From positions 1 to 19,885 of the forward strand of contig NW_021824108.1 of NCBI RefSeq assembly GCF_006345805.1: a DNA stretch of 19,885 nt, in the 5' to 3' direction. The stretch is from Octopus sinensis. Lineage: Eukaryota. A model generated the notes under the pieces. That model saw only the letters and a program-made list of their open reading frames with translations. It was not told where the DNA came from and ran no database searches. Positions within the stretch are counted from its first letter, which is position 1. Every line of letters begins with the position of its first letter. The translations under genes and the position numbers were made by a program. Of the stretch, positions 1 through 19,870 are shown piece by piece.

Positions 1-120
1 TAAAATTGTCATACAGATGACCTATCAATTGGAAATGAGGAATGTAACTTGTTCTCATTCATTCTGACAAATAAAATAGATCAGGTGAAAGTAAAATATA
101 TAGAAATCAAATATACTCAC

Positions 121-192
121 CTATTTGCCACCAATCACGTCCTAACCTCTTAGCCACTCTCAGAAGATCTTTCTCCTTCAGAACTGGACTCT
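121..192 (-). CDS. Exon encoding the N-terminal helices of a death domain (ESPVLKEKDLLRVAKRLGRDWWQIG)
   Basis: atttcAG acceptor (194-193), GTGAGT donor (120-115), 72 nt, phase 1-1, open frame. The L-x2-VA-x2-LG-x-DW-x2-(I/L)G pattern is typical of death-domain helices 1-2. Confidence 0.8.
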
Positions 193-934
193 CTGAAATA
201 AATATTTCCAGCTTTTATAATTTATTGTAAAACTTATTTATCTCTATAAATATTCTGTAGTTTATTGTTGTGGGACATTGTTATCATCAGTGGTTGGCTG
301 GTAACCACTAGGGTTTTGCTCAGTATTTTTATACTTTCCATTGTGGGACCAGGTAATAGCTCAATATTTAGGCCCGCAACAAAATAGACTAACTTTCCGA
401 AACCTTGTTTCTCTTTAACAGAGACATCCTACATAATCTAACAATGTTGCAATTATTTCATTCAATTATCATTTCATAGTTCTCTCTCTCCTTTCATATA
501 TCTGTACCAAATCTATGACATGTGACTGTCCTCTGAACTCTACACTTCACTAACCACCATTCTCCTCATCTTCTGCTAAAGTCCAATATCATCCAATGTG
601 GTCTCCAAAGATCTCGTCAGAATTGCATGACACACCACTTCAAGTAAAATAAACGTAATACCTGTTCTCTTTGCTGTTGGAAATCTTGAATTTTATCATC
701 CCACATGCCAGTTCACCTGGTCATTATCTGGTGCAGGGAATATTTTAAGACTCCTTAATACAGGTGAGCAATGATCAGTTCTCCACAGATGAAACAAAAA
801 GTGATATCAGGTGTCCTAAAACACTGCACACTTGTACAAAACCCCATTCACTACATACAACTGGACATCTACACATTATTGCAGTGAAGACATCTGAAAT
901 GGTACAAAAGGACTGATACTCAAAAATATATAAG

Positions 935-1985
935 AAAGACGGGAATACAAAGTGCGAGCTCCAAATCTTTTATTTTCCAGAATGTTTGGCATATTTGTTT
1001 CTTTTAACCATCTTCGTTCTGTGACTTGATCTCAATGCCTTTACTCTTATTGCAAAATTAGGTAGTTTACCATCGTCGTAATAGTTTTTCAAGTTTCCCT
1101 TTAAACTTCATCAGGGTTTCTCCTGCTATTTTGACCTTCACTTGTTTCTGCTGACCTTTCACAAATGACGGGCTGCATTACCCATTTGCATTGAACCACA
1201 TTCTTCACCAAGTTCCTCAGTCTACTCAGTTAATCCAGAACTATTTGCATATCCTTTTATTTGTTGTTACTATTGTCATGTAATCCATTAATGTCTTCTC
1301 CAGTGTTTTCCTTTGAGCCATTTCTTATCAATCTGCTGATTTAAGTAACATCTCCATAAAAATCACAAACCAAATGACTGATTTTGTAGAAACTACAGCA
1401 ATTCCCGCTTCAAAATGATACCAGTCTACCGAGAAAGTTTTCCTCAAGAACTGCATATTGAAATTGTTATAGCAGCTCCTCATCAGATCCTTAATCTTTT
1501 CTCATATATAAAACAGGTCCACTGCTTCCATCAACAATTTGTTTGCTAGAGAACCATAAACCAGATCAAATCACACAACATTCAATCCCTTTTATTCTTC
1601 TTTCCGTCTTGTATCACATCCTAGATTTAAGACACATGTTCCACACAGCCTGGAATGCCAGAGGATTCCAGTCTTCAAGATACTTTTAGTCCCATATTCA
1701 TTATTCTGTAGATTTACAGTTGATCTCTTTGTGAATACAACCTTATAAATCTTGCCATCAATATTCAAGGTTGAAATTAGTCTGAACTAATCAATCGGTA
1801 TTTGATTGCTGGTTTCAATGGACATTTCAAACTGTCTATGAATGGGAATCATTGCTTTTGCTTTGGATCTCCTGCATATATCCATCCAGTTCATCTTTAT
1901 TGTATTTTAGCTTTCTGTTCTCAGTATCTGCAAACAGAATTTCCTTGTAGAAGTTAAAGAGGAGCGTTTAATTTTGTTGACGACA
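935..1985 (-). mobile_element. Degenerate non-LTR retrotransposon RT fragment, restriction-like-endonuclease group (Hero-like)
   Basis: Broken minus-strand frames read FRLISTLNIDGKIYKVVF, GIPGCVEH, DVIQDGKKNKRD, DWYHFEAGIAV and HSGK*KIWS. These match the FRTISLLNVEGK / GIPGCxEH / LPGKxKxW motifs of this RT group. Many stops and indels. Confidence 0.7.
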
Positions 1986-2009
1986 TGATCATTTTTCTAG
2001 GGCTTTTGG

Positions 2010-2200
2010 AGCAAAATTGTGCCCAAGGCCCTTTTTAAAGTGGTTGATGTTAGGAAAGGCACATCACCATAGAAAAGCCGGAATGTGTTCCTCATCCAAT
2101 CAAGGCGGACAGTATTTGTTAATAAGAACTGACATGGATAGGAATCATCCATCCAATCGATAGGAGCATAGACATCAGATGATAAATGATGAGGGTCATC
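2010..2200 (+). mobile_element. Old degenerate RTE-tail/SINE-like repeat
   Basis: gtggttgatgttaggaaaggc ... agcat ... atgatga resembles the 3' end of the RTE copies (gtggttggcgttaggaatggc ... gatgatg). Homologous to 4180-4390. Confidence 0.5.
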
Positions 2201-2696
2201 AGTGTCTATCTTGGAGAGAGAGGGAGAGAGAGAACAGTTGTCTCAACATCAAACCTAATGCTTTTACATGGATAAAGACAATGTTTAGGGGATGTAATGA
2301 TAAATTTATTATCAGTGAGAACAAAAGGCAGGGTGTTCACATACGGAACACATTTCATTGTAAATCTGTCATATTATGAGAGACATTTGCCTAAATAGCA
2401 ACAACAGCAATAACCTATCAGTAAACTTAGTAACTACATATTTTAGTCCTCCGTTTCAAAATACAGTATTAATTCTATTGTCTTCTAAATTATCCATTTT
2501 CCGAACCATGCCAACCCCGTTGGATATTTTGTGAAATTCCATTGATATCAAAATGTCTAATAGAATTATTATACAGCTAAAATTTCAGATGTAAATTAGG
2601 AATGGATCTTGTCCTCAGTCATTCTGATAAACTACAAATGCTCAGGTGAAGGTTAAAAATATAGAAATCCATGAGGTACTGTTATTTGCTTCTCAC

Positions 2697-2744
2697 AAAC
2701 TGGCTGTGATGTTGTCAAGGCATCCTTCACAGACGTTGGAGTGT
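2697..2744 (-). pseudogene. Dead linker exon copy (TPTSVKDALTTSQPV) with mutated acceptor
   Basis: 48 nt, phase 1-1, GTGAGA donor. The acceptor reads ttcAA instead of ttcAG. Flanks are homologous to those of the other linker exons. Confidence 0.65.
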
Positions 2745-3649
2745 TTGAAATGAATATTTTCAAGTTTTACGTTTTATAGTATAATTTCATTATAGTTATT
2801 GATAATCAACACTTTATTATTGTGGGAAGGGCATACATCTGTAAAAACTAGTTCGTAGGGATGTGGTTGTGTACCCATATAAAAGTTATGTTAACTTTGA
2901 GGGTAACAAGGTGTAAAATATCAGATGAGGGTACAAGATAATGCTATGAAACTTCCAGACAGACAAGTTTAAGAGAGTTAATGAATGATAGCTGATTAAT
3001 TATCATGTTAATGCGGCGTTTAAACACTAACTATCAATATAGATTGTATAAAATCTGTGTGAAGAACATGTGACATTTGTTACAATGAATATGGTTGTGT
3101 CTCAGCACAGTTGATATGATGGCAGTTCCATGAGAAACCATAGAAAAATGTAACCATTTCCAGTACCGAATACTAATGATGAATTCTTTTCTTGGTCAAA
3201 TAACAATGACCAGGTTCCATGATCTAATTTCAACATAACAATCAAGTCGGAAGTAAAACCAAAATGTGAAAGACTGAAAACAGTGACTCTCTTACAATTG
3301 AAACCATCTCAAAGCCAACAATTGTCAGTATAACGATGTCTATATGGACAGTAAACGTTATTGAAACATCGTAACAAGCGATAATTATATATATATAGTT
3401 AGAAAAGAGTTGTGAGTTCAAGTCACACAGGAATCTCTTACGTTCATTCCTTTCCATGTATTGCATATGTTAGCATCAATGTTTTGTTCAAATGTGAACA
3501 TATGTTCTCTGTTCAATATGAATGTTATCAAAATCACTGAATCGGTTTCCACAATCGATATTATTATACTGAGCTAATATGTTATACCAGACAGGAAACT
3601 ACTGTAACAATCTAAGACAAAGAATTATGATGAGTTACTGGAAGACATC

Positions 3650-3830
3650 ATCATCATCATCAACATTCAAAGTTTGTTTTCCATGCTGGAATGGGTTGGA
3701 AATCTTGACAGGATCTGACAAGCCAGACAACTGCACCAGGCCCCAGATGGTTTCTTTGGCATGGTTTTCTACGGTAGGATGTTCTTATTGATGCCAACCA
3801 CCTCACAGAGTGTACGTGGCCCCTTTGTGT
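3650..3830 (-). mobile_element. RTE 3' tail / RTE-tailed SINE remnant
   Basis: (CAT)n followed by ttttccatgctgg..gggttgga..gccaaccac, the reverse complement of the RTE 3' end seen at 5560-5732. Confidence 0.65.
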
Positions 3831-4179
3831 AACGCACAAGTACTGGAATATTTAGCCAAAAGACATGTAAGACAAAGACCCCACAGCCGGGAGAGGGGGT
3901 ATTGCAAATTTCTCTCCCCGCATCCTGATTCTTTTGTCATCACATTCCCTTCTCACCTCCTGAAAATGTCATCAGCTTCAGTGAAGCAAAACATCATAGA
4001 GTAGTGAGGACCGTCTAATTATATAGAATGTAGCACAACTTGATTACTACTTGTGCTATAATTAAATGCTCCCAGAACACACTAGGAAGTGGTTGTTGGA
4101 AACTAGGAAAGATGACACCACAAGTTTGAAAGGAACGTTTGATATTGTTGGGAAATTGATGATCATTTCTAATGCTTGT

Positions 4180-4390
4180 GCGACAATAAAATATACCCAG
4201 GACCTTTTATAAAGTGGTTGGGGTTAGAAAGGGTCTACCACCTTAGAAAAGCTGCAATGTTTAAGTGAGATGTTTTCCTCAACAAATGACGGTTGGCAGT
4301 AATTTCAGATACAACTGACTTGGACAGTGATGACCCACCTAGTGTATGGGAGCATGGAGAGCAGATGAGAAAGGATGAGGATGATATCAT
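4180..4390 (+). mobile_element. Old degenerate RTE-tail/SINE-like repeat (paralog of 2010-2200)
   Basis: aaagtggttggggttagaaagggt ... ttagaaaagc ... gggagcatggaga ... gatgaggatgat. Preceded by tgatcattt and followed by a GA-rich tract, as at 2010-2230. Confidence 0.5.
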
Positions 4391-4907
4391 TTATTGTATT
4401 GAAACTTTTAACCAGCATCTTTCTTGAAAAGACGGAGAGAAAGAGCATGAGTGAGAGAGAGAGAATGAATGAGTACAATGAGATGACAAACAGGGCGAAT
4501 ATTCTCCTTAACGGGAGAGAACCGTTTCAGGGTTTATATTTAATTTTTGTATCTTTCTTTCTGCGAGTGAATGAGTAACTGATGTTTGCATAAAGTACAT
4601 TTATTGGATATTTGTGTTGTTGTAGAAGAACAGAATTTCTTTATAGCTAAGCATTCAAATGAAATCTAGCATTGGAACCTGTTCTCGGTCATTATTAGAT
4701 ATCAATATAGATTGTATATAATCTGAGTAAAGAACATATAACCTTCATTACAATGAATATGATTGTGTCTCAGCACAGCTAATATTATGGTAGTTCCATG
4801 AGCAAACGAAGAAAGATATAACCAAGTCCACTGCCAAATACTAATGACTAATTCATTTCCCGGTCAAATAACAATGACTATATTCTATTAAATAATTTGA
4901 ACGCAAC

Positions 4908-5732
4908 GATGTCAGTGTGTACACAAGGCAGAGTGAAGAGGCCTGAGAGAAGTGTTAGACATAAGAAGCATCAGATGTGGTGTACAAGAGAGACAACTGC
5001 ACTGGTATGGTTATGGGTATGGATGAGGAGAATTGTGGGAAGAAGTGTTACACCCTCACAGTGGAAAGAACCCGTGCAAAGGGGTGACCCAGGAAGACAG
5101 GGGATGACGTGGTGAAACGACCTTCGAACGTTGGGCCTCACAGAGGTAATGGCAAGAGACAGAGACCACTGTAAATATGATGTGATTAAGAGGACTCGGC
5201 AAGTGAAGTGAGATCACAGCTGTAGCCTATACCAGTGGCGCATAACCAGCCCCTTTTAAAAGTACCCTTGAATCACAGAGTGATAAGTTGCGCTTGAGAA
5301 GAATTTCCGAGTCAAGTAAAACCAAAAACCAGAAATCACAAATCAAAATCAAATCAAGATCGAAATCAAAATGCAAATTGTAATTATGGCCAATGCCAGT
5401 GCCGCCTGGCTGGCACATAATAAGTACCATTCAAACATTGTTTGTTGCCAGTGCCGCCTGACTGGTTCCCTGTGCCGTTGGCACATAAAAAGTACCTTCC
5501 GAACGTGGACAATGCCAGCCCCAACTTCAACTGGCTCCTGTGTCGGTGGCACGTAAAAGGCACCCACCACACTCTCGAAGTGGTTGTCGTTAGGAATAGC
5601 ATACATATGTGGAAACCTTGCCAGATCACATTGCAGCCTGACGCAGCCTACTGCCTTGCCAGTGAAATCGTCCGACCCATGCCACCATAAGAAACGGATG
5701 TTAAATGATGATGATGATGATGATGATGATGA
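4908..5732 (+). mobile_element. 5'-truncated RTE-clade LINE, copy 1
   Basis: Degenerate ORF C-terminus (RSIRCGVQERQLHWYG ... G*PRKT ... RTLGLTEVMARDRD ... RTRQVK*) typical of RTE. The 3' UTR has repeated hairpin subunits and a (GAT)n tail. Confidence 0.88.
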
Positions 5733-5982
5733 GTTCTGTGACCAAATGACAAAATTAACTCTATTGTGTCTTCTAATTTGAACATTATTACCAACAGCAT
5801 TAACCTCAATGGGTATTTCATAAACTCACAGTAAATCGATATCTTTAATACAATTATTATAGAGATAATCGTTCAATTGGAAAATAGGAATGGAAGCTGT
5901 TTTCAGTTATTCTTTCGAGCACAATATACTCGGGGGAAGTAACCTTACAGAAATCAATTGGGAACTATTATTTTATACTCAC

Positions 5983-6060
5983 CAATTGCCTGAGATGTAG
6001 CCCCTAATTCCTGACATGTAGCCTCTGTTTGTACACACCTGTCCTCACAATTTGGAGCCC
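5983..6060 (-). CDS. Linker exon (GAPNCEDRCVQTEATCQELGATSQAI)
   Basis: tttcAG acceptor, GTGAGT donor, 78 nt, phase 1-1, open. Confidence 0.75.
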
Positions 6061-6284
6061 CTGAAATAAATATTTCCAAGTTTTACATTTAAAAATAAAC
6101 TTTCTTCATCTTTATTTATATTAAACTCTATCTTGTTATTGTGAGACATTCAATTTCTGTTGTTAATGGTCAAATGTTGACCATTATGGTTTTGGTCAAT
6201 ATTTCTGTACTTTCTACAGTGGTCCCATGTAATAGCCCAATATGAAACAATAAAACAGACTAACATTCTATATCCACCCTCTCC

Positions 6285-6317
<33 letters not shown>

Positions 6318-6984
6318 AAAAACATTAAATATTCTAACAATGTTGCAATTATCTCATTTAATTAACACTTGATAACAGTTTTCTCTTAGCATTGTCTTTC
6401 TTTTCTTATAACTGCGCCAAATCTATGGCATGGCACAGTCCTCTCATCTCTAGAATTCACTAATCAACATTCCTCTCTAATTAAGTAAAACTGAGCCCAT
6501 AAAGACATGTCCTTTACGTGCATACCCCCCACCCCGCACACAATCTGTCCCCTAAAAATCATCTCCACAAGCCAAATTCCATACACCCTTCCCCAACATG
6601 ATCCCTAACAAGGTGTAAAATGTTAGGTGAGGGTACACGAGGTCCCTATGACAAAATCAGTTTACATTTCAGACATACAAATGTAAGAGAGTTAATGAAT
6701 TATAGCTTATTAATTATCATGATAATTGGGTATATATGTGATACAATGGCACAGTGCTTGACGGTGCAATACTAGATATCAATATAGATTGTATATAATC
6801 TGAGTAAAGAACATATAGCCTTCATTACTATGAATATGATTGTGTCTCAGCACAGCTAATATTATGGTAGTTCCATGAGCAAACGAAGAAAGATATAACC
6901 AAGTCCACTGCCAAATACTAATGACTAATTCATTTCCCGGTCAAATAACAATGACTAACTTCCATTAAATAATTTGAATGCAAC

Positions 6985-7825
6985 GATGTCAGTGTGCACA
7001 CAAGGCAGAGTGAAGAGGCCTGAGAGAAGTGTTAGACATAAGAAGCATCAGATGTGGTGTACAAGAGAGACAATTGCACTGGTATGGTCATGTGTATGGA
7101 TGAGGAGTGCTGTGGGAAGAAGCGTTACACCCTAACAGTGGAAGGAACCCGTGGAAAGGGGTGACCCAGGAAGACAGGCATGACGTGGTGAAACGACCTT
7201 CGAACGTTGGCCCTCACAGAGGTAATGGCAAGAGACAGAGACCTCTGGAAATATGACGTGATTAAGAGGACTCGGCAAGTGAAGTGAGATCATGGCTGTA
7301 GCATATACCAGTGGCGCATAACCAGCCCTTTTTAAAAGTACCCTTGAATCACAGAGTGATAAGTTGCGCTTGAGAAGAATTTCCGAGTCAAGTAAAACCA
7401 AAAACCAGAAATCACAAATCAAAATCAAATTAAGATCGAAATCAAAATGGAAATTGTAGTTGTAACCGATGCCAGTGCCGCCTGGCTGGCACCTGTTCCT
7501 GTGTCACGTTATAAGTACCATAGAAGCATAGGTCCTTGTCACTGCCGCCTGACTAGTTCCCTGTGCCGTTGGCACATAAGAACACCATCCGAACGTGGTT
7601 GATGCCAGCACCCACCCCGACTGGCTCCTGTGTCGGTGGCACGTAAAAAGCACCCACCACACTCTCGGAGTGGTTGGCGTTAGGAATGGCATACATATGT
7701 GGAAACCTTGCCAGATCACATTGGAGCCTGGCGCAGCCTACTGCCTTGCCAGTGAAATCATCCAATCCATGCCACCATAAAAAACGGACGTTAAACGATG
7801 GTGATGTTGATGATGATGATGATGA
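6985..7825 (+). mobile_element. 5'-truncated RTE-clade LINE, copy 2
   Basis: Same 5' truncation point and (GAT)n tail as copy 1. Confidence 0.88.
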
Positions 7826-8075
7826 GTTCTGTGACCAAATGACAAAATTAACTCTTTTGTGTCTAAAATTTGAACATTATTACCAACAGCATTAACCTCA
7901 ATGGGTATTTCATAAACTCACAGTAAATCGATATCTTTAATTCAATTATTATACAGATAATCGTTCAATTGGAAAATAGGAATGGAATCTGTTTTCAGTT
8001 ATTCTTTCGAGCACAATATACTCGGGGGAAGAAAACCTTACAGAAATCAATTGGGAACTATTATTTTATACTCAC

Positions 8076-8153
8076 CAATTGCCTGAGATGTAGCCCCTAA
8101 TTCCTGACATGTAGCCTCTGTTTGTACACACCTGTCTTCAAACTTTGGAGCCT
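8076..8153 (-). CDS. Linker exon (EAPKFEDRCVQTEATCQELGATSQAI)
   Basis: tttcAG acceptor, GTGAGT donor, 78 nt, phase 1-1, open. Confidence 0.75.
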
Positions 8154-8370
8154 CTGAAATAAATATTTCCAAGTTTTACATTTAAAAATAAACTTTCTTC
8201 ATCTTATTTATATAAACTCTATCTTGTTATTGTGAGACATTCAATTTCTGTTGTTAATGGTCAAATGTTGACCATTATGGTTTTGGTCAATATTTCTGTA
8301 CTTTCTACAGTGGTCCCATGTAATAGCCCAATATGAAACAATAAAACAGACTAACATTTCTATATCCACC

Positions 8371-8404
<34 letters not shown>

Positions 8405-9080
8405 AAAAACACATTAAATATTCTAACAATGTACCAATTATCTCATTTAATTAACACTTGATAAGAGTTTTCTCTTAGCATTGTCTTTCTTTTCTTATAA
8501 CTGCGCCAAATCTATGGCATGGCACAGTCCTCTCATCTCTAGAATTCACTAATCAACATTCCTCTCTAATTAAGTAAAACTGCGCCCATAAAGACATGTC
8601 CTTTATGTGCATACCCCCCACCCCGCACACAATCTGTCCCCTAAAAATCATCTCCACAAGCCAAATTCCATACACCCTTCCCCACATGATCCCTAAATCC
8701 CTAACAAGGTGTAAAATGTTAAGTGAAGGTACACAAGGTCCCTATGACAAAATATGTTTACATTTCATACATACAAATGTAAGAGAGTTAATGAATTATA
8801 GCTTATTAATTATCATGATAATTGGGTATATATGTGATACAATGGCACAGTGCTTGACGGTGCAATACTAGATATCAATATAGATTGTATATAATCTGAG
8901 TAAAGAACATATAACCTTCATTACAATGAATATGATTGTGTCTCAGCACAGCTAATATTATGGTAGTTCCATGAGCAAACGAAGAAAGATATAACCAAGT
9001 CCACTGTCAAATACTAATGCTTAATTCATTTCCTGGTCAAATAACAATGACTAACTTCCATTAAATAATTTGAACGCAAC

Positions 9081-9909
9081 GATGTCAGTGTGCACACAAG
9101 GCAGAGTGAAGAGGCCTGAGAGAAGTGTTAGACATAAGAAGCATCAGATGTGGTGTACAAGAGAGACAACTGCACTGGTATGGTCATGTGTATGGATGAG
9201 GAGTGCTGTGGGAAGAAGCGTTACACCCTAACAGTGGAAGGAACCCGTGGAAAGGGGTGACCCAGGAAGACAGGCATGACGTGGTGAAACGACCTTCGAA
9301 CGTTGGCCCTCACAGAGGTAATGGCAAGAGACAGAGACCTCTGGAAATATGACGTGATTAAGAGGACTCGGCAAGTGAAGTGAGATCACAGCTGTAGCCT
9401 ATACCAGTGGCGCATAACCAGCCCCTTTTAAAAGTACCCTTGAATCACAGAGTGATAAGTTGCGCTTGAGAAGAATTTCCGAGTCAAGTAAAACCAAAAA
9501 CCAGAAATCACAAATCAAAATCAAATTAAAATCGAAATCAAAATGGAAATTGTAGTTGTGACCGATGCCAGTGCCGCCTGGCTGGCACCTGTTCCTGTGT
9601 CACGTTATAAGTACCATAGAAGCATAGGTCCTTGTCACTGACGCCTGACTAGTTCCCTGTGCCGTTGGCACATAAGAAACACCATCCGAACGTGGTTGAT
9701 GCCAGCACCCACCCCGACTGGCTCCTGTGTCGGTGGCACGTTAAAAGCACCCACCACACTCTCGGAGTGGTTGGCGTTAGGAATGGCATACATATGTGGA
9801 AACCTTGCCAGATCACATTGCAGCCTGACGCAGCCTACTGCCTTGCCAGTGAAATCGTCCGACCCATGCTACTATAAAAACGGACGTTAAACGATGATGA
9901 TGATGATGA
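9081..9909 (+). mobile_element. 5'-truncated RTE-clade LINE, copy 3
   Basis: Same 5' truncation point and (GAT)n tail as copies 1 and 2. Confidence 0.88.
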
Positions 9910-10159
9910 GTTCTTGACCAAATGACAAAATTAACTCTATTGTGTCTTCTAATTTGAACATTATTACCAACAGCATTAACCTCAATGGGTATTTCATAAA
10001 CTCTCAGTAAATCGATATCTTTAATTCAATTATTATACAGATAATCGTTCAATTGGAAAATAGGAATGGAATCTGTTTTCAGTTATTCTTTCAAGCACAA
10101 TATACTCGGGGGAAGAAAACCTTACAGAAATCAATTGGGAACTATTATTTTATACTCAC

Positions 10160-10237
10160 CAATTGCCTGAGATGCAGCCCCTATTTCCTGACATATAGCC
10201 TCTATTTGTACACACCTGTCTTCAAACTTTGGAGCCT
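10160..10237 (-). CDS. Linker exon (EAPKFEDRCVQIEAICQEIGAASQAI)
   Basis: tttcAG acceptor, GTGAGT donor, 78 nt, phase 1-1, open. Confidence 0.75.
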
Positions 10238-11915
10238 CTGAAATAAATATTTCCAAGTTTTACATTTAAAAATAAACTTTCTTCATCTTTATTTATATTA
10301 AACTCTATCTTGTTATTGTGAGACATTCAATTCTGTCGTTAATGGTCAAATGTTGACCATTATGGTTTTGGTCAATATTTCTGTACTTTCTACAGTGGTC
10401 CCATGTAATAACTCAATATGACCACAATAAAACAGACTAACATTTCTAATCCACCCTCTCCCTCTCTCTCTCTCTCTCTAAAAACACATTAAATATTCTA
10501 ACAATGTTGCAATTATCTCATTTAATTAACACTTGATGACAGTTTTCTCTTAGCATTGTCTTTCTTTTCTTATAACTGTGCCAAACCTATGGCATGGCAC
10601 AGTCCTCTCATCTCTAGAATTCACTAATCAACATTCCTCTCTAATTAAGTAAAACTGCGCCCATAAAGACATGTCCTTTATGTGCATACCCCCCACCCCG
10701 CACACAATCTGTCCCCTAAAAAACATCTCCACAAGCCAAATTCCATACACCCTTCCCCAACATGATCCCTAACAAGATATAACATGTAATGTGAGGGTAC
10801 AGGATGTTCCTATGACAAAATCAGTTTACATTTCAGACATACAAATGTAAGAGAGTTAATGAATTATAGCTTATTAATTATCATGATAATTGGGTATATA
10901 TGTGATACAATGGCACTGTGCTTGACGGTGCAATACTAGATATCAATATAGATTGTATATAATCTGAGTAAAGAACATATAGCCTTCATTACAATGAATA
11001 TGATTGTGTCTCAGCACAGCTAATATTATGGTAGTTCCATGAGCAAACGAAGAAAGATATAACCAAGTCCACTGCCAAATACTAATGATTAATTCATTTC
11101 CTGGTCAAATAACAATGATTATCTTTCATTAAATAATTTGAACGCAACAATCAAGACCAAAGGGTGAAACACTCAGAAAACTGTGCCTCTTTTAGCATTA
11201 ATATCATCTAAAATCTAACAAGAGTGAGAAAAAGAATGACTATATGGATGGTAAATGTTGTTCAAACAATGTAATAAGTGTATATTATATATAGCTACAA
11301 AGAAGGATTTGTGTATTCAAGTCATATTCAATTTCTGATCGTATATTTTGTATAAACACCAATAATTTGTTTAAATATAAACAGATATTCACGGTTCAAT
11401 ACTAAATTTAACATTTAATAAAATTAAGTTCATGATGAATATTCTTATACAGAGTTAATATTTAATTAGAATTTTCTAATTTGCAACAACAAAATGTATT
11501 CTAACCAGAGACATTCAGGGTACACAACCCCAGAAAATACAAAATATTACGACAGACATCTGGCTACATAACAACATCAAGAATAACCTATCAGAAAACT
11601 TACGAAAGATCTTAGTAGAAAAACAAACAACTATTTTATTAATTCACGAGTTTACACCTAAAATAATAAATTATAGTTCCATCTTCCAGAAGACAATATT
11701 AACTCTATTGTGGCTTTTAATTTATCCATTTTACCAAACACGTTAACCATGACTTTATGAAATTTCAGTAATATTTTTAATACAATTACTTTAGAGCTAA
11801 CCTTTCAAATGGAAATTAGAGATGGGATTTGTTCTCCACCATTCTAATACGCAAAATAGCTGAGGTGAATGTAAAATCCATAGAAATTAATTAAGATCTC
11901 TTATTTTAAACTCAT

Positions 11916-11966
11916 CAACTGTCTCTGCCACAGTCTGCACTCCCTTCTCTTCAAACTTTGGACTCT
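11916..11966 (-). pseudogene. Linker exon (ESPKFEEKGVQTVAETV) with mutated donor
   Basis: atttcAG acceptor intact, 51 nt, phase 1-1. The donor reads ATGAGT instead of GTGAGT. Confidence 0.65.
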
Positions 11967-13119
11967 CTGAAATATGTGTCTCCAAGTTTTATATTTATTT
12001 ATAGCACAAGTTCTTTATATTTATTAATAATCTATATTTTATTAATGAGAAACATTCATACCATCAATGGCCAACCGGCGATCATAATTGTTTTGGTCAA
12101 TATTTTTATACTTTCAACAGTGGACCCATGTAATAGCCAATATTTAGCTCCAAAACGAACTCTAGTTGATCTTTGTAAATTTCCTCTCTCTGTTAAGATA
12201 TCCTACATAATCTAACAATGCTGTAATTATATCACTTAATTATCACCTAATAACAGTTAATCTGTAGGTTTTGGTTTCCCTGCTTATATCTATGCCAAAT
12301 CTATTGCCTTTTCAAAACCCTGATCTTCACTAACAACCTGTTTGATTCCAGTGTCAACAAATTTATTCATCAAAGATATAACAACAAACACATGTCACAA
12401 CCACTTCAAGAAGGAGAAACATACACCTGATCTCTTTGTTAAACATTGTTGCTGATAATCCCTAATTTTAACTTCACAGTTCACCAGAATGTCATCTCAT
12501 TCAAGATATATTTGAAGGTTTCATGATCTGGTTGGAATGTGACACTCAAGTCAGAACCAAAACCTAAATTTGAGAGACGGACAAAACAGTGTCTCTGTTA
12601 GCCTTGATATCACCCAAAGACCAACACAGCAACATGGAGTTGCGTGTTGAAGTCTCAAAACAGGTGACACATACAATTTACTCCTTTAAAATATTCTACT
12701 AAATTTAATACTTTACCAAAGATGACACTGATGTCCTTGTAAGTACTGTTGTATTTAATTATCTTCTAATAACTCATAATTATCTTATAATAACTCATAA
12801 TTAATTATAGAGCTGATGGAGATTTATTGATACTTCAGTTACTCACTAATTATCTTGCAGAATCTTCCATTATTTTTATGTTGCAGACTACAACCCTCTT
12901 GAAGTGTGACATGTTTCCTACTTGGATAAGGTCAATGTTTGGTGGATGTAGTGTGAGAGATATACTATTACAGAGAACAGACACTAGGAACACCTTTTAT
13001 CATAAATCTGCCAGATTATGGCAGACCTCTGCCTACATAACAACATGAAGTATATTATTCTACACAATAAGGGCAGTGGGACAAGCAGGACAAACAGACA
13101 GATCAGCAAGATTTCTTAC

Positions 13120-13257
13120 CATCTCCAGTTCTGCTCGTTACAGGTTTCCCGCACTTCAAACATCGTTGAAGTGTAACGTTTGAACATCCCTTACATATTA
13201 CAAGGTGTCCACATGGATGAACTTTTGTTGTGGCCGCTTTTTCTGCACCACAAACAT
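13120..13257 (-). CDS. Mind bomb-type C3HC4 RING finger exon
   Basis: atccacAG acceptor, GTAAGA donor, 138 nt. Open in phase 1: VCGAEKAATTKVHPCGHLVICKGCSNVTLQRCLKCGKPVTSRTGD, containing PCGH-x3-C-x2-C-x8-C-x2-C and ending like MIB RING1 (VxSRT). The first ligand pair (CLWC) lies in another frame. Confidence 0.88.
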
Positions 13258-13653
13258 CTGTGGATAAAACAGAAATATCCAATCAATAACATTCATTTAT
13301 AACAAATATTATTTATTTACATGTTCGGAATAGAGAATATTATAAGATACATCAGTAACTACCAAGAGTAGAGCAGAAATCTTCTTTAAACATTACATAC
13401 ATACAGCATTTTGTGTAGTTAAATGACGCAGAAACACAACACACACACACATACATACACACACATGCATACATACATTGATAAATGTTTGTCTTGACCC
13501 TGATACATCATAGAAATTGGTTGACACACAGTGAACTGCATATCTTCCAGAAATATATTTCACTTCTAACATCGAACTCATTTCTTCTGAAGAAAATATC
13601 TACACAGGTTTCTTTATATACACATACTGTATTGTATACATTCCGTCAACACA

Positions 13654-13716
13654 GATTAGCAGATGAGGTTTCCAGCACTGCAGAGTGGCAGAAATTACCC
13701 GAAACTAGTACTGGTC
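13654..13716 (+). ncRNA. Type I hammerhead ribozyme motif (one core substitution), probably from a Penelope-like or retrozyme repeat
   Basis: GAUUAG-CAGAUGA-[hairpin 13667-13700]-GAAA-CUAG-UA-CUGGUC. Stem I has 6 bp with two G-U pairs, stem III is the palindrome ACUAGU and the triplet is GUA. The core reads CAGAUGA rather than CUGAUGA. Confidence 0.65.
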
Positions 13717-13883
13717 AGCTAGACACATCCCTAGAAGATGGTAGGGGTTCGCTCCCCTGCTGCAATTTATCGGATGCAGTTCCGCATTGTTAACCAACTG
13801 GAGGAGTTGTCTCTTGGGGTTCAAAATTCGCAGTGGAGTCCATTGGAACAGATAGTCACGCTGGCGTGGCCTACGAGTATTAC

Positions 13884-13932
13884 TTATATATATACATATA
13901 CATATACATATACAGAGAGAGAGAGTGAGAGA
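13884..13932. repeat. Compound microsatellite (TA)n(CATATA)n(GA)n
   Basis: Directly visible. Confidence 0.9.
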
Positions 13933-14135: not shown

Positions 14136-15920
14136 ATATTCAATTCAATTCAATATTTTTTTCAATTCCTTTTTTTATTGGCTCAAAGGTTATGTAGGAG
14201 GATAGGGAGTTATGTACAGAGAGGGTGGTCATACAAAGAGTTCAGACCATTTCTGGTCAAGAGAGACTTTGAACCGAGCGGTCGTCGACATCTTCACTAT
14301 GTCGTCCGGCAGCTTATTCCACGGACCCGCAACCCGGACGGAGAAAGCCCCTCTCCTTCGATTGAGATGAAATTGTCGTAGATAGAGCTTTTCGGAATGA
14401 CCCCGCAGCCGACGCTCTGGAGCAGGAGTAAAGAACAGCTCTTTCGAGAGGTTACACTTTCTGCTTATGATGTTGTGAGCAAGAATGAGATCACCACGGC
14501 GTCGTCGTTTTTCTAGAGAATAAAGGTCGAGCGTCTTCAGCCTTTCTTCATAAGACAAATGCTTAAGACCAAGAACCATGCGGGTAGCCAGCTTCTGGAC
14601 TCTTTCGAGATGCTGTATGTCTTTGAGGAGATAAGGAGAAGAGGCTTGAATCCCATACTCCAATATGGGTCTCACCAGCATGACATAGAGTGGTAGGAAT
14701 ATGGCTGCTGTGAGCATTCCGAATGACCGTTGAATCAAGAACAGAATTCCGCGTGCTTTGTTGGCAGCATGGACGCACTGGGCCGAAGGCGAAAAGGAGG
14801 AATCCACCAAGATACCCAGGTGCTTTACCTGATCGGTCATCTCCAGCAGCAGACGACCCGGCTCGAAATCAAGTTGAGTTGCAGGAGGAGAGCCAACAGG
14901 CAGATGACCGCACTTTGACACGTTCAGACACAGGTCCCGTTTGTTTGACCACCTCCGAACTTGGTGGAGGCATCGACGAAGATCCTCTATATCACTGTGA
15001 GGAGCAACCAGTTTGACATCGTCGGCAAATAGAAGGGTGTGTTGCGTGAGGTCGTCGGGCAAGTCATTTACGAAGACTAAAAATAATAACGGCCCAAGCA
15101 CTGAACATTGAGGCACGCCACTGCTCACACTGGAGACGTCGGACCGCGAACCATTAAATTGGACTTGGAAGGAGCGATCTGAGAGGAAGGCACCAACCCA
15201 TCGTACAATATCCGGATGGAAACTATATGCTTGAAGCTTGACAAGTAATAGGCGGTGGTTAACCGAGTCAAAAGCATTGGCAAAGTCCAATAAAACGATG
15301 TCAACAGCATCACCATCATCCAGGATACGCGCCACCAATTCTTCCATTACCAGAAAGCTGGTCAAGCATGATCTCTTCAGCACGAAGCCGTGTTGGGAAT
15401 CAGAGATAGAGGCTGTGTTTTGGAGGTGGAGCAACATACTTTTCTTAAGGATGGTTTCGAATATCTTGCTGAATATTGAAGTAAGGGAAACCGGTTGGTA
15501 GTTAAGTGGGTCTTTGCGGCACCCTTTCTTGAAAATAGGGCAGATTATCGCTGTTCTCTAGTCCGCAGGTACAACACCCGTCGCTAATGACATATTGAAT
15601 AGAAGTGTTAAAGGTTGGCAGATGACCGGAGCCAACGCTTTGATAACCTGTGGGTGTATGCCATCAGGGCCGTGACCCTTGTTGATATCGAGGCCTTGAA
15701 TAACGCGTTCGACTTCGTCCCGAGTGATGACCAATCTAGGCATTGGAGGTACCCATCTATCAAATGGAGGGGGTTCACGACCATCATCTTGTTTGAAAAT
15801 TGTCGAAAAAGCCTCGGCAAATAACTAACTCTGCTGATAAGGGTCCTCAATCGATACACCTGTTGATTATGTGTCACGATGCTTCCCCTTTATTGATGGC
15901 GTCGTATATTTGTTCCTTAA
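14136..15920 (-). mobile_element. Young 5'-truncated CR1-clade LINE (reverse transcriptase)
   Basis: 402-aa ORF 14229-15437 with QHGF, LDFANAFDSV, GVPQCSVLGP, FADD, LGILVD and RRRRGDLI. The upstream in-frame part (GPDGIHP, PAD*RTAIICPIFKKG) is interrupted by one stop. The 3' UTR has AATAAA (14179-14174) and an (AATTG)n tail. The 5' boundary is approximate. Confidence 0.93.
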
Positions 15921-15984
15921 ATGTGACATCTTCTTTTCTACTACATTAAATTTTTCTCCTCTTCTAATTTGGCTGACTACAAAA

Positions 15985-17081: not shown

Positions 17082-17552
17082 CTTAGAACAAAGAGAAAAG
17101 CAGTGCAGCACCCATGACTTTCAGAAATATTTTTCGCTGTTCAGAATTTTTGAAGCATGAAATAAACTGATATCTCTTGTTAGATATCAGGACACTGCAT
17201 TCTTCAAAACTTCCATATTTCCTGAAATTCCCTAACACTCTTCCTGATGTACCTATGTCTTCTTTCTTTGATATAACTCTTTTACTGTTTCCCTCCTTTC
17301 GGGTTGTTTTATTATATGTATCGTGCATCTACTTCTAGCTTCCATTGCTGCCTTTCTTTGACTAATTGCAGTTTTCTGTCCCCTATTTGCCCCTTTCCAG
17401 TAACTTCAGCTGCGCTCTATAGACATTATATTATTATTACAACATTCACATAAACGATCATTTGTAAAGTAGAGAAAATCTTCTGAGGCTTGTCAATTGA
17501 AGAAAACAGATCTATATTTATGCAGACCAAAAATCAATATCTCTGAACAATA

Positions 17553-17710
17553 GGCGCAGGAGTAGATGTGGTAAGTAGCTTGCTTACCAACCACATGGTT
17601 CTGGGTTCAGTCCCACTGCGTGGCACTTTCGGCAAGTGACTTTACTATAGCTTCGGACTGACCAATGCTTTTTGAGTGGATTTGGTAGAGGGAAACTGAA
17701 AGAAGCCCAT

Positions 17711-17776
<66 letters not shown>

Positions 17777-17976: not shown

Positions 17977-18690
17977 TGATATTTAAATTTCAACAGACAA
18001 AGAAAGTTTTGTATATTCACTGAGGGGGAAATGTGTCTGCTTCTTAAGTAGCTCATACAGAGAGATGTATGGCAACGAAATTGCCAAACCTTATAAAATA
18101 CGGGAGTGAAAGGCGACTAAAACACCTAGTAATGGTATATGTGTTACTTGAATTATTTACGTTTCCTGGCAGGTTTTTTTCTCTATGAAGATATGTGGCA
18201 ATATTCCATCAGTATTTGCAGAAATATAATATATACACAGTTGGTGTGTGTTTGTAGGTTATTTTTCTATGAAATCATTCTTAATATTGACTGATTCGGA
18301 CATAGAAGAGTGAGAAAAAGATGTTGGTAGACAGATAAATTCCACTTAATTCTAAGTAACAGTTTCAAAATGGAATTCATTCACTTCATTATTTAGATCT
18401 ATATTTTCGTATTGATCACAAATCTTTAAAATAGGGAACGAAGAGGGGTAGGTGGTGATGGACAGTGAAGTATAACTGGCAACACTACGAATCATGTGAA
18501 TGTAATCTAAATCGTGTTCTTTCTTTGATCTCCTGACAACTGCATATTGTTTATTGTGTGGCCTTTGACAAAAACACTAGCGACAGTATAATGTATGGGT
18601 AGAATTAAAACGAAATAAACATATAAACATGATTATATACAAAATAGAAAATGTACTGGTTTATCTGTTCCATTGCCAGGAAATACTTAC

Positions 18691-18862
18691 TGTGGTGGTA
18701 AAAATGCTTCTAATTTTTCTCAAATTTGGGTCCTTAATGAGGTCAAATGGTGTGTTATATTTGTTGTTTTTATGGTGAAAGTCCGCTCCCTGGCTGGCGA
18801 GATATCTACCTACCACTACACCAGAGAGCATTTCATCCTCTTCAGGTAAGGGAAGTGCAGCA
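18691..18862 (-). CDS. Exon with the last ankyrin repeat of a Mind bomb-like protein
   Basis: atttgtAG acceptor, GTAAGT donor, 172 nt. AALPLPEEDEMLSGVVVGRYLASQGADFHHKNNKYNTPFDLIKDPNLRK matches the MIB1/MIB2 pattern FLA-x2-GAD-x4-N-x-K-x2-SPLDL-x2-DPNL. Confidence 0.88.
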
Positions 18863-19444
18863 CTACAAATGATGAATAAATAAAAATTATGACAATATTA
18901 CACAAATATTCAAAACAAATGCCCCTAATTACACAAAAGTTCATCTAAATTTACTCATAGCTTGTTTATCCACTAATTAAAGCAATTACAAAGTATTGAG
19001 TTCCTACATAATCTTTAATTGAGTCCATTTCCCATTTTCATGTTTTTACTTTATTTTAACACTGAGACACCTCTAAATATTGTCATTACATTGAGCAGGA
19101 GAAAACCGTATTGATTAACATCAAGCTTATTTATTAATGAGTAAATATTTACTTGTCAATATTCAATAGAAAGTCAAATTTAGGAAGAACAAACCAACAA
19201 GAACCTATCTATATAATTGGCTTGATAAAGGCGAGCATGTGGCCATAAGAAAGAGTATTGTATATATAAATATAACACAACATGAGAAGAAAGAACATAA
19301 GTTATATCAGAAACAAAAACACCTATAACATAACAAAGTCAATCCCACACAGATATGACCACATATCAATAATGTTTCCATAATTAAGCAAGAAGCATCT
19401 TTGAATGATGACGGTAAAGTAAAGGAAGCAGGAATTAGTGTCAA

Positions 19445-19650
19445 GTCAGAAAAGTAATGGAGGAGTATTTTTAATCACGGACAAGTGAATTTTGGAAGAG
19501 GCGACTTGCAAGTCTACCAGATAGATGGAAGAGCATTGTAGAAAATGAAGGAGAATATGTTTTAGATTAACAGAAAAAAGTACTTTGTTTATCTTAATTT
19601 TGAAAAATATAAGGATTATAAAAAACTGCTTCATTTATGAGATGACAGCA
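19445..19650 (+). mobile_element. Mariner/Tc1 transposon 3' fragment
   Basis: VRKVMEEYF*SRTSEFWKRRLASLPDRWKSIVENEGEYVLD* (19445-19570) is the typical mariner transposase C-terminus (LPxRWxxxVENxGEY). A probable TIR remnant follows. Confidence 0.8.
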
Positions 19651-19764
19651 AAAAGTCCAGAAGTATTGAAGTCTATATTGTTGATGACATCAGATAGCCG
19701 AATACAGTGAACGGGCTTTAAACAGCATTTTACAAGATATATACTCAAACTTAAAATCACTACT

Positions 19765-19795
19765 TGTGTGTGTTTGTCTGTGTGAGTGTGTGTGT

Positions 19796-19857
<62 letters not shown>

Positions 19858-19870
19858 TTGTGTGTGTGTG
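19765..19870. repeat. (TG)n microsatellite
   Basis: Directly visible. Confidence 0.95.

Follow-up and report, generated by a model that had tools for sequence, protein, structure and literature searches.

The linker exons of an octopus ubiquitin-ligase gene family, whose proteins join ankyrin (ANK) repeats, a RING finger, a linker and a death domain (DD), are very probably diverged tandem copies of DD exon 1 together with the adjoining intron sequence. These copies appear to have been turned into spacer cassettes, and then multiplied and exchanged, while some of them died. The window, as we call the whole stretch of DNA analysed, comprises 19,885 nucleotides of Octopus sinensis (contig NW_021824108.1) with a minus-strand gene of this family; its content is the 3' half of one member of the Octopus-restricted ANK–RING–linker–DD family. 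NCBI names proteins of this family "MIB1/MIB2-like". The initial annotation had proposed that the linker exons are DD exon 1 duplicates, flanks included. This is supported by homology of exon-plus-flank units, by genes without linkers, by intermediate exons and by a match of linker and DD consensus peptides (z = 4.9).

The following exons of the host gene were recognized in the window:

18691..18862, minus strand: last ankyrin-repeat exon, frame broken by deletions of 1, 1 and 2 nt relative to a paralog

13120..13257, minus strand: RING-finger exon, with a 2-nt deletion relative to a paralog (Pfam zf-C3HC4_3 in the paralog proteins)

121..192, minus strand: DD exon 1, 72 nt, phase 1-1 (cag/.../gtgagt), peptide (E)SPVLKEKDLLRVAKRLGRDWWQI(G)

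The RING exon ends in phase 1 (…GAT G/gtaag) and therefore feeds phase 1-1 cassettes. Phase 1 applies to all junctions from the RING exon through DD exon 2, which permits gain, loss or swapping of units among paralogs. In the window, segments similar to locus L003 and segments similar to locus L001 form a mosaic. Other dispersed repeats are also present in it. An ARAGORN tRNA scan of the SINE-like repeat gave no match.

Six co-oriented units, 65-78% identical, were observed in the part of the window left of the RING exon, and one of them holds DD exon 1. In each, a single phase 1-1 mini-exon is preceded by about 450 nt of intron and followed by about 130 nt. A search with the unit profile (nhmmer) returned six full copies, all on the minus strand, with E values of 1e-115 to 1e-175. 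These copies and the elements associated with them are as follows:

16..631, minus strand: DD exon 1 unit (nhmmer E = 1e-143), the exon with about 440 nt of intron upstream and about 105 nt downstream, homologous to all linker units

2576..3202, minus strand: decayed linker unit; the exon-equivalent 2697-2744 reads SNTPTSVKDALTTSQPV, acceptor CAA instead of CAG

5864..6514, minus strand: full unit copy

5983..6060, minus strand: 78-nt linker exon, copy 3, canonical AG/GT, phase 1-1, peptide (G)APNCEDRCVQTEATCQELGATSQAI

7956..8603, minus strand: full unit copy

8076..8153, minus strand: 78-nt linker exon, copy 2, peptide (E)APKFEDRCVQTEATCQELGATSQAI

10040..10678, minus strand: full unit copy

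10160..10237, minus strand: 78-nt linker exon, copy 1, peptide (E)APKFEDRCVQIEAICQEIGAASQAI

11796..12396, minus strand: unit with the 51-nt segment (nhmmer E = 3.5e-139)

11916..11966, minus strand: 51-nt linker-type segment, peptide (E)SPKFEEKGVQTVAETV, acceptor intact, donor ATGAGT instead of GTGAGT

4686..11151, minus strand: young tandem array, period about 2.09 kb, 3.1 copies, 93-98% identical, each copy with one 78-nt linker exon and repeat-derived filler

The self-comparison proposed in the initial annotation recovered the six units by self-BLASTN as well as by nhmmer. Self-BLASTN paired 4-562 with 10028-10636 (66%, 620 nt), 12-471 with 11792-12245 (70%, 467 nt) and 2454-2822 with 11684-12047 (68%), while 5742-6429, 7835-8518 and 9918-10593 each paired with 11686-12307 (66-67%). 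The homology of the units was continuous through the exon on both sides. The phase 1-1 character initially ascribed to the exons held for every unit. An upstream-flank match had been placed at 193-760 and 11967-12530; BLAST showed it over about 280 nt, and profile or MAFFT alignment over about 440-470 nt, ending at approximately 631-661 and 12396-12426, short of 760 and 12530. The same flanks were indeed found as full nhmmer copies around 2697, 5983, 8076 and 10160, although the 2697 unit has no AG acceptor. The exons at 5983, 8076 and 10160 are to be corrected to 78 nt, inside the young 2.09-kb array. The stretch 11916-11966, first described as a 51-nt exon, has an intact acceptor but a non-canonical donor.

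Two of the six "exons" of the window thus have no splice site on one side, and both the 51-nt segment and the 2697 unit look inactivated. The L003 counterpart of the 2697 unit (15280-15964) is 97% identical and has no annotated exon; an exon related to it is in use in O. bimaculoides P0029 ('ETPMCVKEVLTTSQQI'). The counterpart of the 51-nt unit in L001 (14628-15229) has the same AT donor and again no annotated exon. We regard the 51-nt segment as a probable dead cassette; should it be included, it would probably act as a terminal read-through exon (…TVDEFKIRDLN, stop). Isoform P0022 reads through this exon type and then terminates. Annotated octopus isoforms contain 1-4 copies of the 78-nt exon type.

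The linkers are predicted to be disordered. In the AlphaFold model of P0012, linker residues 159-209 had pLDDT 27-35 and no secondary structure, and the DD helix began at residue 214. In five copies of the 78-nt exon we counted 14 non-synonymous changes and 1 synonymous change (random expectation 79% non-synonymous), and judging by these counts the substitutions look neutral.

Such neutral-looking substitutions, together with the two cassettes that miss a splice site, would also fit a window that codes for nothing, that is, a dead gene copy whose open cassette frames are left over from recent duplication. Four frame-breaking deletions relative to L001 in the ANK and RING exons point the same way, since with these frameshifts the exons of the window may not yield protein. 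However, all four deletions lie inside A-runs, so assembly error is possible. Moreover, open frames and canonical splice sites are kept in all three 78-nt exons and in DD exon 1, and near-identical cassettes occur within annotated proteins of O. sinensis and O. vulgaris. We therefore regard a dead copy as possible but unlikely, and the conclusion about the family would stand even if this copy were dead.

The window does not contain a complete DD, only exon 1 (24 residues, 121-192), which codes for DD helix 1 and the conserved Trp; this stretch was aligned to the RIPK1 DD by means of a profile of the family's DD. The DD unit of the window is 96% identical to that of L003, in which exon 2 comes 512 bp later, and judged from L003 DD exon 2 should lie about 0.5 kb past the left edge of the window. 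The profile of eight family DDs matched the RIPK1 DD (E = 1.6e-8, profile positions 3-85), and also the death domains of PIDD, ankyrin (ankyrin-3), CRADD, Fas and FADD. Pfam Death (PF00531) scored 27.7 bits in P0021 (cut-off 22.6) and 20.5 bits in P0048; P0003, which carries the DD type of the window, gave no Pfam Death match at E <= 0.01. The AlphaFold model of P0012 has helices in the DD region at 214-235, 251-265, 273-282 and 286-296 (pLDDT approximately 62-86). By the profile comparisons the C-terminal domain of the family is a RIPK1/PIDD-like death domain.

The gapless alignment of the 51-nt segment (11916-11966) with the first 51 nt of DD exon 121-192, reported in the initial annotation, was reproduced: 30 of 51 nt and 7 of 17 amino acids were identical (shuffle p ~0.002-0.009). 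Exon-only nucleotide tests of the window DD exon were significant against this segment and against unit 5 of L002 (p ~0.002-0.009). Most other DD-versus-linker pairs, and one pair of true DD exons, were not significant in these tests; exon similarity by itself is therefore insufficient for the claim. The consensus of 18 different 17-residue linkers matched the consensus of 19 DD exon 1 peptides in register (z = 4.9, p < 1e-5). The residues best kept in both, E-S-P-K-x-E-E-K, stand ahead of helix 1 proper; the homology reaches the helix-1 residues V13, A14 and L/V17, and in the 72-78-nt exons it runs on to L-G and the 3' end of the exon. The 72-nt linker exon of L004 shared 12 of 24 amino acids (p < 1e-5) and 44 of 72 nt with a true DD exon 1, the latter value being inside the range among true DD exons. 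On this similarity we consider it a degenerate full-length copy of DD exon 1, that is, an intermediate. The P0073 linker 'KNPNFEEKQRETMAKRV', which retains the DD motif AKR[VL], was also counted as an intermediate. A first MAFFT alignment set the 3' end of the window DD exon against linker intron, as if the DD donor had shifted. This was rejected: donor-to-'ATTGATTTC' spacing is normal in the DD units of O. bimaculoides, L001 and L004, 15 intron nt are deleted from the window DD unit, and the 72- and 78-nt linker exons align collinearly with DD exons.

Units of this kind, the DD exon 1 unit included, were homologous in the window and in seven further loci of O. sinensis and O. bimaculoides. 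In 225 kb we obtained 49 matches to the unit profile, 46 of them between the RING exon and DD exon 2 (45 in gene orientation). Within the sampled DNA the flanks thus do not form a generally dispersed repeat, which speaks against the objection, raised with the initial annotation, that they might be an unrelated one. On either side of L003 (10-kb flanks), and in the remaining introns, the profile search found no unit copies. Beyond the O. bimaculoides gene, 5 kb from its 3' end, there were three unit fragments of mixed orientation; they represent some dispersal or neighbouring relics. The family is clustered, with a DD gene adjoining L006 on the opposite strand, so stray fragments can be relics of neighbouring members.

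These three fragments, the repeat-rich octopus genomes and the further repeats of the window could be taken to mean that the shared flanks are a dispersed mobile element (SINE or MITE) carrying splice sites. The linkers would then be independent exonisations, and the presence of the element at DD exon 1 a coincidence or an insertion. We consider this extremely improbable, as the copies in the 225 kb sampled concentrate in the RING-to-DD interval, co-oriented and with the exon in the same place and phase, their homology is unbroken through the exon, and the exon peptides are related in register.

Genes without linkers were found among the paralogs, as were genes with many, in line with the comparison of zero, one and many linkers suggested initially. 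L006 (RING 8803-8931, DD exon 1 9295-9369) and L007 (RING 18414-18554, DD exon 1 19072-19146) each have one unit only, that of the DD. Cassette use was read from NCBI gene models; annotated isoforms carry from 0 to 6 or more cassettes in series, and it is presumed that each cassette is really spliced in and has a function. P0003, P0005, P0012 and P0079 have no genomic locus on record. Further arrays were observed in L002 (about 2 kb) and L004 (166 bp). Linker units of different loci were 93-95% identical, while the DD units of the same loci were 65-78% identical, which indicates active sequence exchange.

Neighbour-joining trees of the units with bootstrap (18, then 14 units), also suggested at the outset, resolved recent clades only. 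The flank tree was star-shaped, with deep nodes at 3-50% and DD-unit monophyly in 0.3% of bootstraps. As the deep nodes are weak, the trees give no order or number of founding duplications, and any number of founding events would be a supposition. The initial annotation had DD exon 1 duplicated repeatedly with its flanks; unit homology agrees with duplication, but repeated copying from the DD exon is not shown by it. The expansions that can be seen went from linker to linker, and duplication of this kind makes up most of the growth, for example the 2.09-kb array.

We infer that the direction was from DD exon to linker. Weak deep nodes, exchange among linker units and best-kept residues that precede helix 1 would also suit a reversed or mixed direction, in which a pre-existing linker exon was the source, and gene conversion from a linker unit overwrote DD exon 1 in its N-terminal part, together with the flanks. 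This is very unlikely in our view: zero-linker genes have the same flanks around DD exon 1, the homology extends into helix 1 and, in the longer exons, to the 3' end, and DD exon 1, which matches helix 1 of the RIPK1 DD in the alignment, is needed for the fold.

In the simplest members of the family, the RING exon, ending in phase 1, leads straight to DD exon 1 (72 nt, phase 1-1), with DD exon 2 next. According to the DD-to-linker origin that we prefer, a stretch of some 0.6-1 kb that contains DD exon 1 and adjoining intron on both sides would have been tandemly duplicated. The phase 1 symmetry of the exon would let extra upstream copies be spliced in with frame and domain intact. Freed from the constraint of the fold, the copies would lose the Trp and the hydrophobic residues that form the helix, some of them at full length (72-78 nt) and others as 51-nt exons after an in-frame loss of 21 nt, and become acidic, disordered spacer cassettes. 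These would multiply further by unequal crossing-over (the 2.09-kb array and those of L002 and L004) and be exchanged among paralogs, and some would die by loss of a splice site (the 11916 and 2697 units). The array might even be a regulated generator of diversity, in which cassettes of fast turnover, exchanged among paralogs, are combined by alternative splicing under the control of unusually conserved intron blocks and set the distance from the RING to the DD platform, in a family possibly tied to cell death or immunity. We find this speculative and rather improbable. For conserved RNA pairing between the intron blocks, RNAalifold on 12 units predicted no pairs.

Tandem exon duplication was reportedly treated by Kondrashov and Koonin in 2001 and by Letunic et al. 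in 2002. It occurs in animal genes, where two homologous exons that are used in a mutually exclusive way are the classic result (PMC9741552). The octopus units resemble it in that adjacent exons and flanks are homologous and in the same phase, recombination is local and unequal, and copy number varies among paralogs. However, the octopus copies are additive in gene models, stand upstream of a retained original and code for a disordered spacer, not for the same structural slot or domain element. Arrays of short symmetric exons that code for disordered or repetitive segments are known from titin (PEVK exons) and collagen (54-bp exons). The octopus exons are likewise short, in phase and in tandem, with variable inclusion, hence variable length, and little constraint on the peptide; unlike those, they have a founding exon whose source is traceable, a piece of a globular domain (DD helix 1) that is still present and used at the end of the array. 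Patthy's rule describes exon shuffling of phase 1-1 modules, whereas the octopus unit is one third of a domain and takes a linker role only.

We also assessed how far the family extends. When 1.84 billion representatives were searched exhaustively with phmmer, only 58 matched; among ten checked by name, nine were from Octopus and one was a DD-only protein of Argonauta. A word-indexed profile search found no relatives outside Octopus. Hmmscan of P0003 and P0021 detected Ank, zf-C3HC4_3 and Death only, and the Pfam lists of 48 matches held the same set; MIB/HERC2, ZZ and REP domains were absent from both. Full-text literature searches returned no description of the ANK–RING–DD family or its linker exons. 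As in the C-terminal half of MIB1/MIB2, ankyrin repeats are followed by a C-terminal C3HC4 RING, but in the octopus family MIB/HERC2, ZZ and REP are not detected and a death domain, closest to that of RIPK1, is fused to the ligase. Mammalian MIB2 is described in PMC5912950 as binding and ubiquitylating RIPK1. The octopus proteins combine, in a single chain, a MIB-like ligase module with a RIPK1-like DD, whose counterparts are partners in vertebrate TNF signalling.

In summary, the family preserves the stages of this process: the presumably ancestral zero-linker layout, a degenerate full-length copy, shortened spacer exons, young arrays and dead cassettes. Tandem duplication of phase 1-1 exons is textbook, and this is therefore a well-documented example and not a new principle. 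As an instance of new coding sequence derived from part of an older domain it is clear, though not revolutionary. A phase-symmetric exon of a folded domain may be duplicated in place, escape from the fold and become a disordered linker of adjustable length.

We identified six co-oriented units in the window by self-BLASTN and with an nhmmer profile. In each, a mini-exon is flanked by upstream intron (about 450 nt) and downstream intron (about 130 nt), and the multiple alignment of the units was unambiguous. The upstream flank …AAAACTTGGAAATATTTATTTCAG was found in all of them, including the unit of the death-domain (DD) exon, and the downstream flank GGTGAGTATAAAATAA…ATTGATTTCTNTAAATTTTAC was likewise common to the units. 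The elements of the gene were as follows.

18691-18862, minus strand: ankyrin exon, first in gene order
13120-13257, minus strand: RING exon, after the ankyrin exon, ending in phase 1
16-631, 2576-3202, 5864-6514, 7956-8603, 10040-10678 and 11796-12396, minus strand: exon-plus-flank units, after the RING exon in gene order, the one at 16-631 containing DD exon 1
4686-11151, minus strand: tandem array of 2.09-kb copies, 93-98% identical, holding three 78-nt exons
121-192, minus strand: DD exon 1, encoding (E)SPVLKEKDLLRVAKRLGRDWWQI(G)

The initial annotation had proposed that the linker exons, the mini-exons between the RING exon and DD exon 1, are duplicates of the latter. It relied on a gapless match of the 51-nt segment (11916-11966) to the start of the DD exon, which we confirmed (30/51 nt, 7/17 residues, shuffle p ~0.002-0.009). 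The register of this alignment was correct, the match between consensus sequences was stronger than that of the single pair, and all units were phase 1-1, as had been stated for these two exons. Homologous exon-plus-flank units are thus a real observation, with four corrections. The unit flanks are homologous, DD unit included, but the upstream similarity reaches about 440-470 nt and not about 565 nt. The 51-nt segment aligns to the DD exon, but its donor position reads ATGAGT, not GT. The exon at 2697 lies in a unit with the same flanks, but has CAA instead of the acceptor CAG. The exons at 5983, 8076 and 10160 also carry these flanks, but belong to the young 2.09-kb array.

We compared these damaged cassettes with their relatives (L001-L007 denote comparison octopus loci, P numbers proteins of the family). 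The AT "donor" of the 51-nt segment was also present in the L001 counterpart, which lies outside the P0021 gene model, and isoform P0022 reads through the 51-nt exon type into the intron and then meets a stop. P0012, P0016 and P0051 include a functional relative, 'ARPIFEDK[EV]VQTVEEPR', among their cassettes. The acceptor of the 2697 unit is lost; the CAG-to-CAA change is common to the L003 counterpart, which is unannotated, and a related exon is in use in O. bimaculoides (P0029). Compared with the annotated paralog L001, three deletions (1, 1 and 2 nt) were present in the ankyrin exon and one (2 nt) in the RING exon. All four, at about 18845, 18839, 18715 and 13240, lie within A-runs and break the frame, and the ankyrin exon read from its acceptor gives an immediate TGA. 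This copy of the gene is either a pseudogene or affected by homopolymer assembly errors. The ankyrin-RING intron holds a retrotransposon reverse-transcriptase gene fragment (14232-15824, minus strand; Pfam RVT_1, E = 4.5e-27), broken by a stop at ~15558. Microsatellites were found at 17714-17765, (AT)26, and 19765-19870, (TG)53.

The window DNA is AT-rich and eukaryotic. We joined the translations of its minus-strand exons and used them as a protein search query, which matched Octopus proteins only (O. sinensis, O. vulgaris, O. bimaculoides). These are named "E3 ubiquitin-protein ligase MIB1/MIB2-like" at NCBI, and for them ankyrin repeats, a single C3HC4 RING and, in part of the set, Death are listed as precomputed domains. 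We detected no MIB/HERC2, ZZ or REP domains in the family proteins and therefore consider them not to be true Mind bomb orthologues. A search of 1.84 billion representatives gave 58 matches. Ten of them were checked by name: nine were from Octopus, and the other was an Argonauta DD-only protein. The family seems to be restricted to Octopus, and a full-text literature search found no description of it.

We assign the exon at 121-192 as DD exon 1 from sequence comparison. In annotated paralogs a second exon, encoding about 68 residues, continues the exon-1 peptide; here that exon falls off the left edge of the window. A profile of eight family C-terminal domains matched the RIPK1 death domain (E = 1.6e-8, profile positions 3-85), and also those of PIDD, ankyrin, CRADD, Fas and FADD. 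Pfam Death was above threshold in P0021, and the exon-1 peptide aligns with the first helix and the conserved Trp of the death domain. The same DD type is also found at the end of a protein of 1283 residues that has leucine-rich repeats and a seven-pass membrane region (P0093 and P0080 set), and in a second protein of this set it is preceded by 'PSTSQHE' repeats. Therefore the DD cassette has been shuffled into other gene architectures.

For the gene family as a whole, descent of linker exons from DD exon 1 was supported. The DD-exon-1 unit had its flanks in common with the linker units at all loci examined from the two species. The 17-residue linker consensus (E-x-P-K-F-E-D-K-E-V-Q-T-V-A-E-P-V) agreed position by position with the DD exon-1 consensus (E-S-P-K-L-E-E-K-D-L-L-R-V-A-K-K-L), giving z = 4.9 against column permutations, a value reached by 0/100,000. 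We also found intermediates. The 72-nt exon of L004, (E)SLNLEENRAHSTSKKVAVKQQQV, precedes the real DD exon 1 and is coding in the P0079 annotation. Its identity to DD exon 1 of L007 is 12/24 residues (p < 1e-5) and 44/72 nt, on a par with true DD exons compared with one another, and it is without the Trp and the helix hydrophobic residues. The P0073 peptide 'KNPNFEEKQRETMAKRV' keeps the DD motif AKR[VL], and, save for a 6-nt insertion, exons of the 78-nt type and the entire DD exon are collinear; the 78-nt type also keeps L-G. Cassette number in annotated isoforms was 0, 1, 2, 3, 4 or at least 6. In the zero-linker locus L006, 363 bp separate the RING exon (8803-8931) from DD exon 1 (9295-9369), and there is a single unit; L007 has the same layout.

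We asked whether the unit flanks are a dispersed repeat, and scanned all 225 kb of non-N sequence of the window and seven loci (L001-L004 and L007 from O. sinensis, L005 and L006 from O. bimaculoides) with the unit profile. The interval from the RING exon to DD exon 2 accounted for 46/49 matches, in gene orientation apart from a single inverted fragment (L003). The remaining three matches, which speak for a dispersed repeat, were fragments located 5 kb beyond the O. bimaculoides gene on its 3' side (L005 66401-67797, mixed orientation, no intact exon). They may be relics of a neighbouring family gene, since the family occurs in clusters and L006 has a DD gene next to it on the opposite strand. 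A dispersed repeat is therefore unlikely; within the 225 kb of family loci sampled, this objection was not borne out. A dispersed repeat unrelated to the units lies at 17537-17725 (79% match to L003 4799-4609, upstream of that gene). It is SINE-like in look, and ARAGORN found no tRNA in it.

Duplication is supported, but it cannot be said that the DD exon was the repeated template, because the flank trees resolve recent events only. The tree of exon-plus-flank units did not resolve the deep ones (DD-unit monophyly 0.3% bootstrap), and unit types were 65-78% identical among themselves and to DD units. The visible multiplications were linker-to-linker: the 2.09-kb array in the window, a ~2-kb array in L002 and a 166-bp array in L004. 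The last (12407-13290) holds five or six 51-nt exons (VCPKSE[DE]KAVQAVVESV), each with about 115 bp of intron, and one of the copies shows an internal deletion together with donor damage. The L004 72-nt exon suggests one or more separate DD-to-linker events. Between loci whose DD units were only 65-78% identical, linker units reached 93-95% identity. The window, too, has a mosaic structure: its DD-proximal 4.7 kb (1-4693) is like L003 (96%), while the RING/51-nt/78-nt part (9692-13893) and the ankyrin part (17986-19838) are like L001 (91% and 94%). Given this linker identity and the mosaic, paralogs have evidently swapped cassettes through unequal recombination or gene conversion. The mosaic junction (~4686-4697) is the 3' edge of the 2.09-kb array and points to recombination between paralogs or an assembly chimera.

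We ran AlphaFold on P0012 with a 24-sequence alignment. Residues 159-209, comprising the RING tail, one 26-residue and one 17-residue cassette, had pLDDT 27-35 and no secondary structure; the death domain began at residue 214 as a confident helix. Among five available copies of the 78-nt exon, all with open frames (5/5), there were 14 non-synonymous changes and 1 synonymous change. Since random expectation is 79% non-synonymous, this peptide is not under purifying selection. The best reading is that the cassettes would separate the E3 RING from the DD by a disordered spacer whose length can be adjusted. Between unit types, the intron flanks were better conserved than the exon (mean pairwise identity 0.86 just before the acceptor, 0.75-0.81 in the block 240-287 nt upstream and 0.76 after the donor, versus 0.39-0.51 inside the exon). 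Such conserved intron blocks recur across all units; examples in the window are 432-479 (240-287 nt upstream of the DD exon) and ~40-60 (after the donor). They may be splicing elements or a product of gene conversion; conserved RNA pairing in the units was not found by RNAalifold.

Tandem duplication of symmetric phase-1 exons is a known process. In the classic cases the copies are mutually exclusive alternatives, whereas the octopus cassettes are added in series, and a fragment of a folded domain gave rise to a disordered linker while the original exon is still in use. By analogy, the cassette array may work like the mini-exon arrays of titin PEVK or collagen. The advance is modest, as the mechanism is known; it differs in the serial copies and in the conversion of a domain fragment into a linker.
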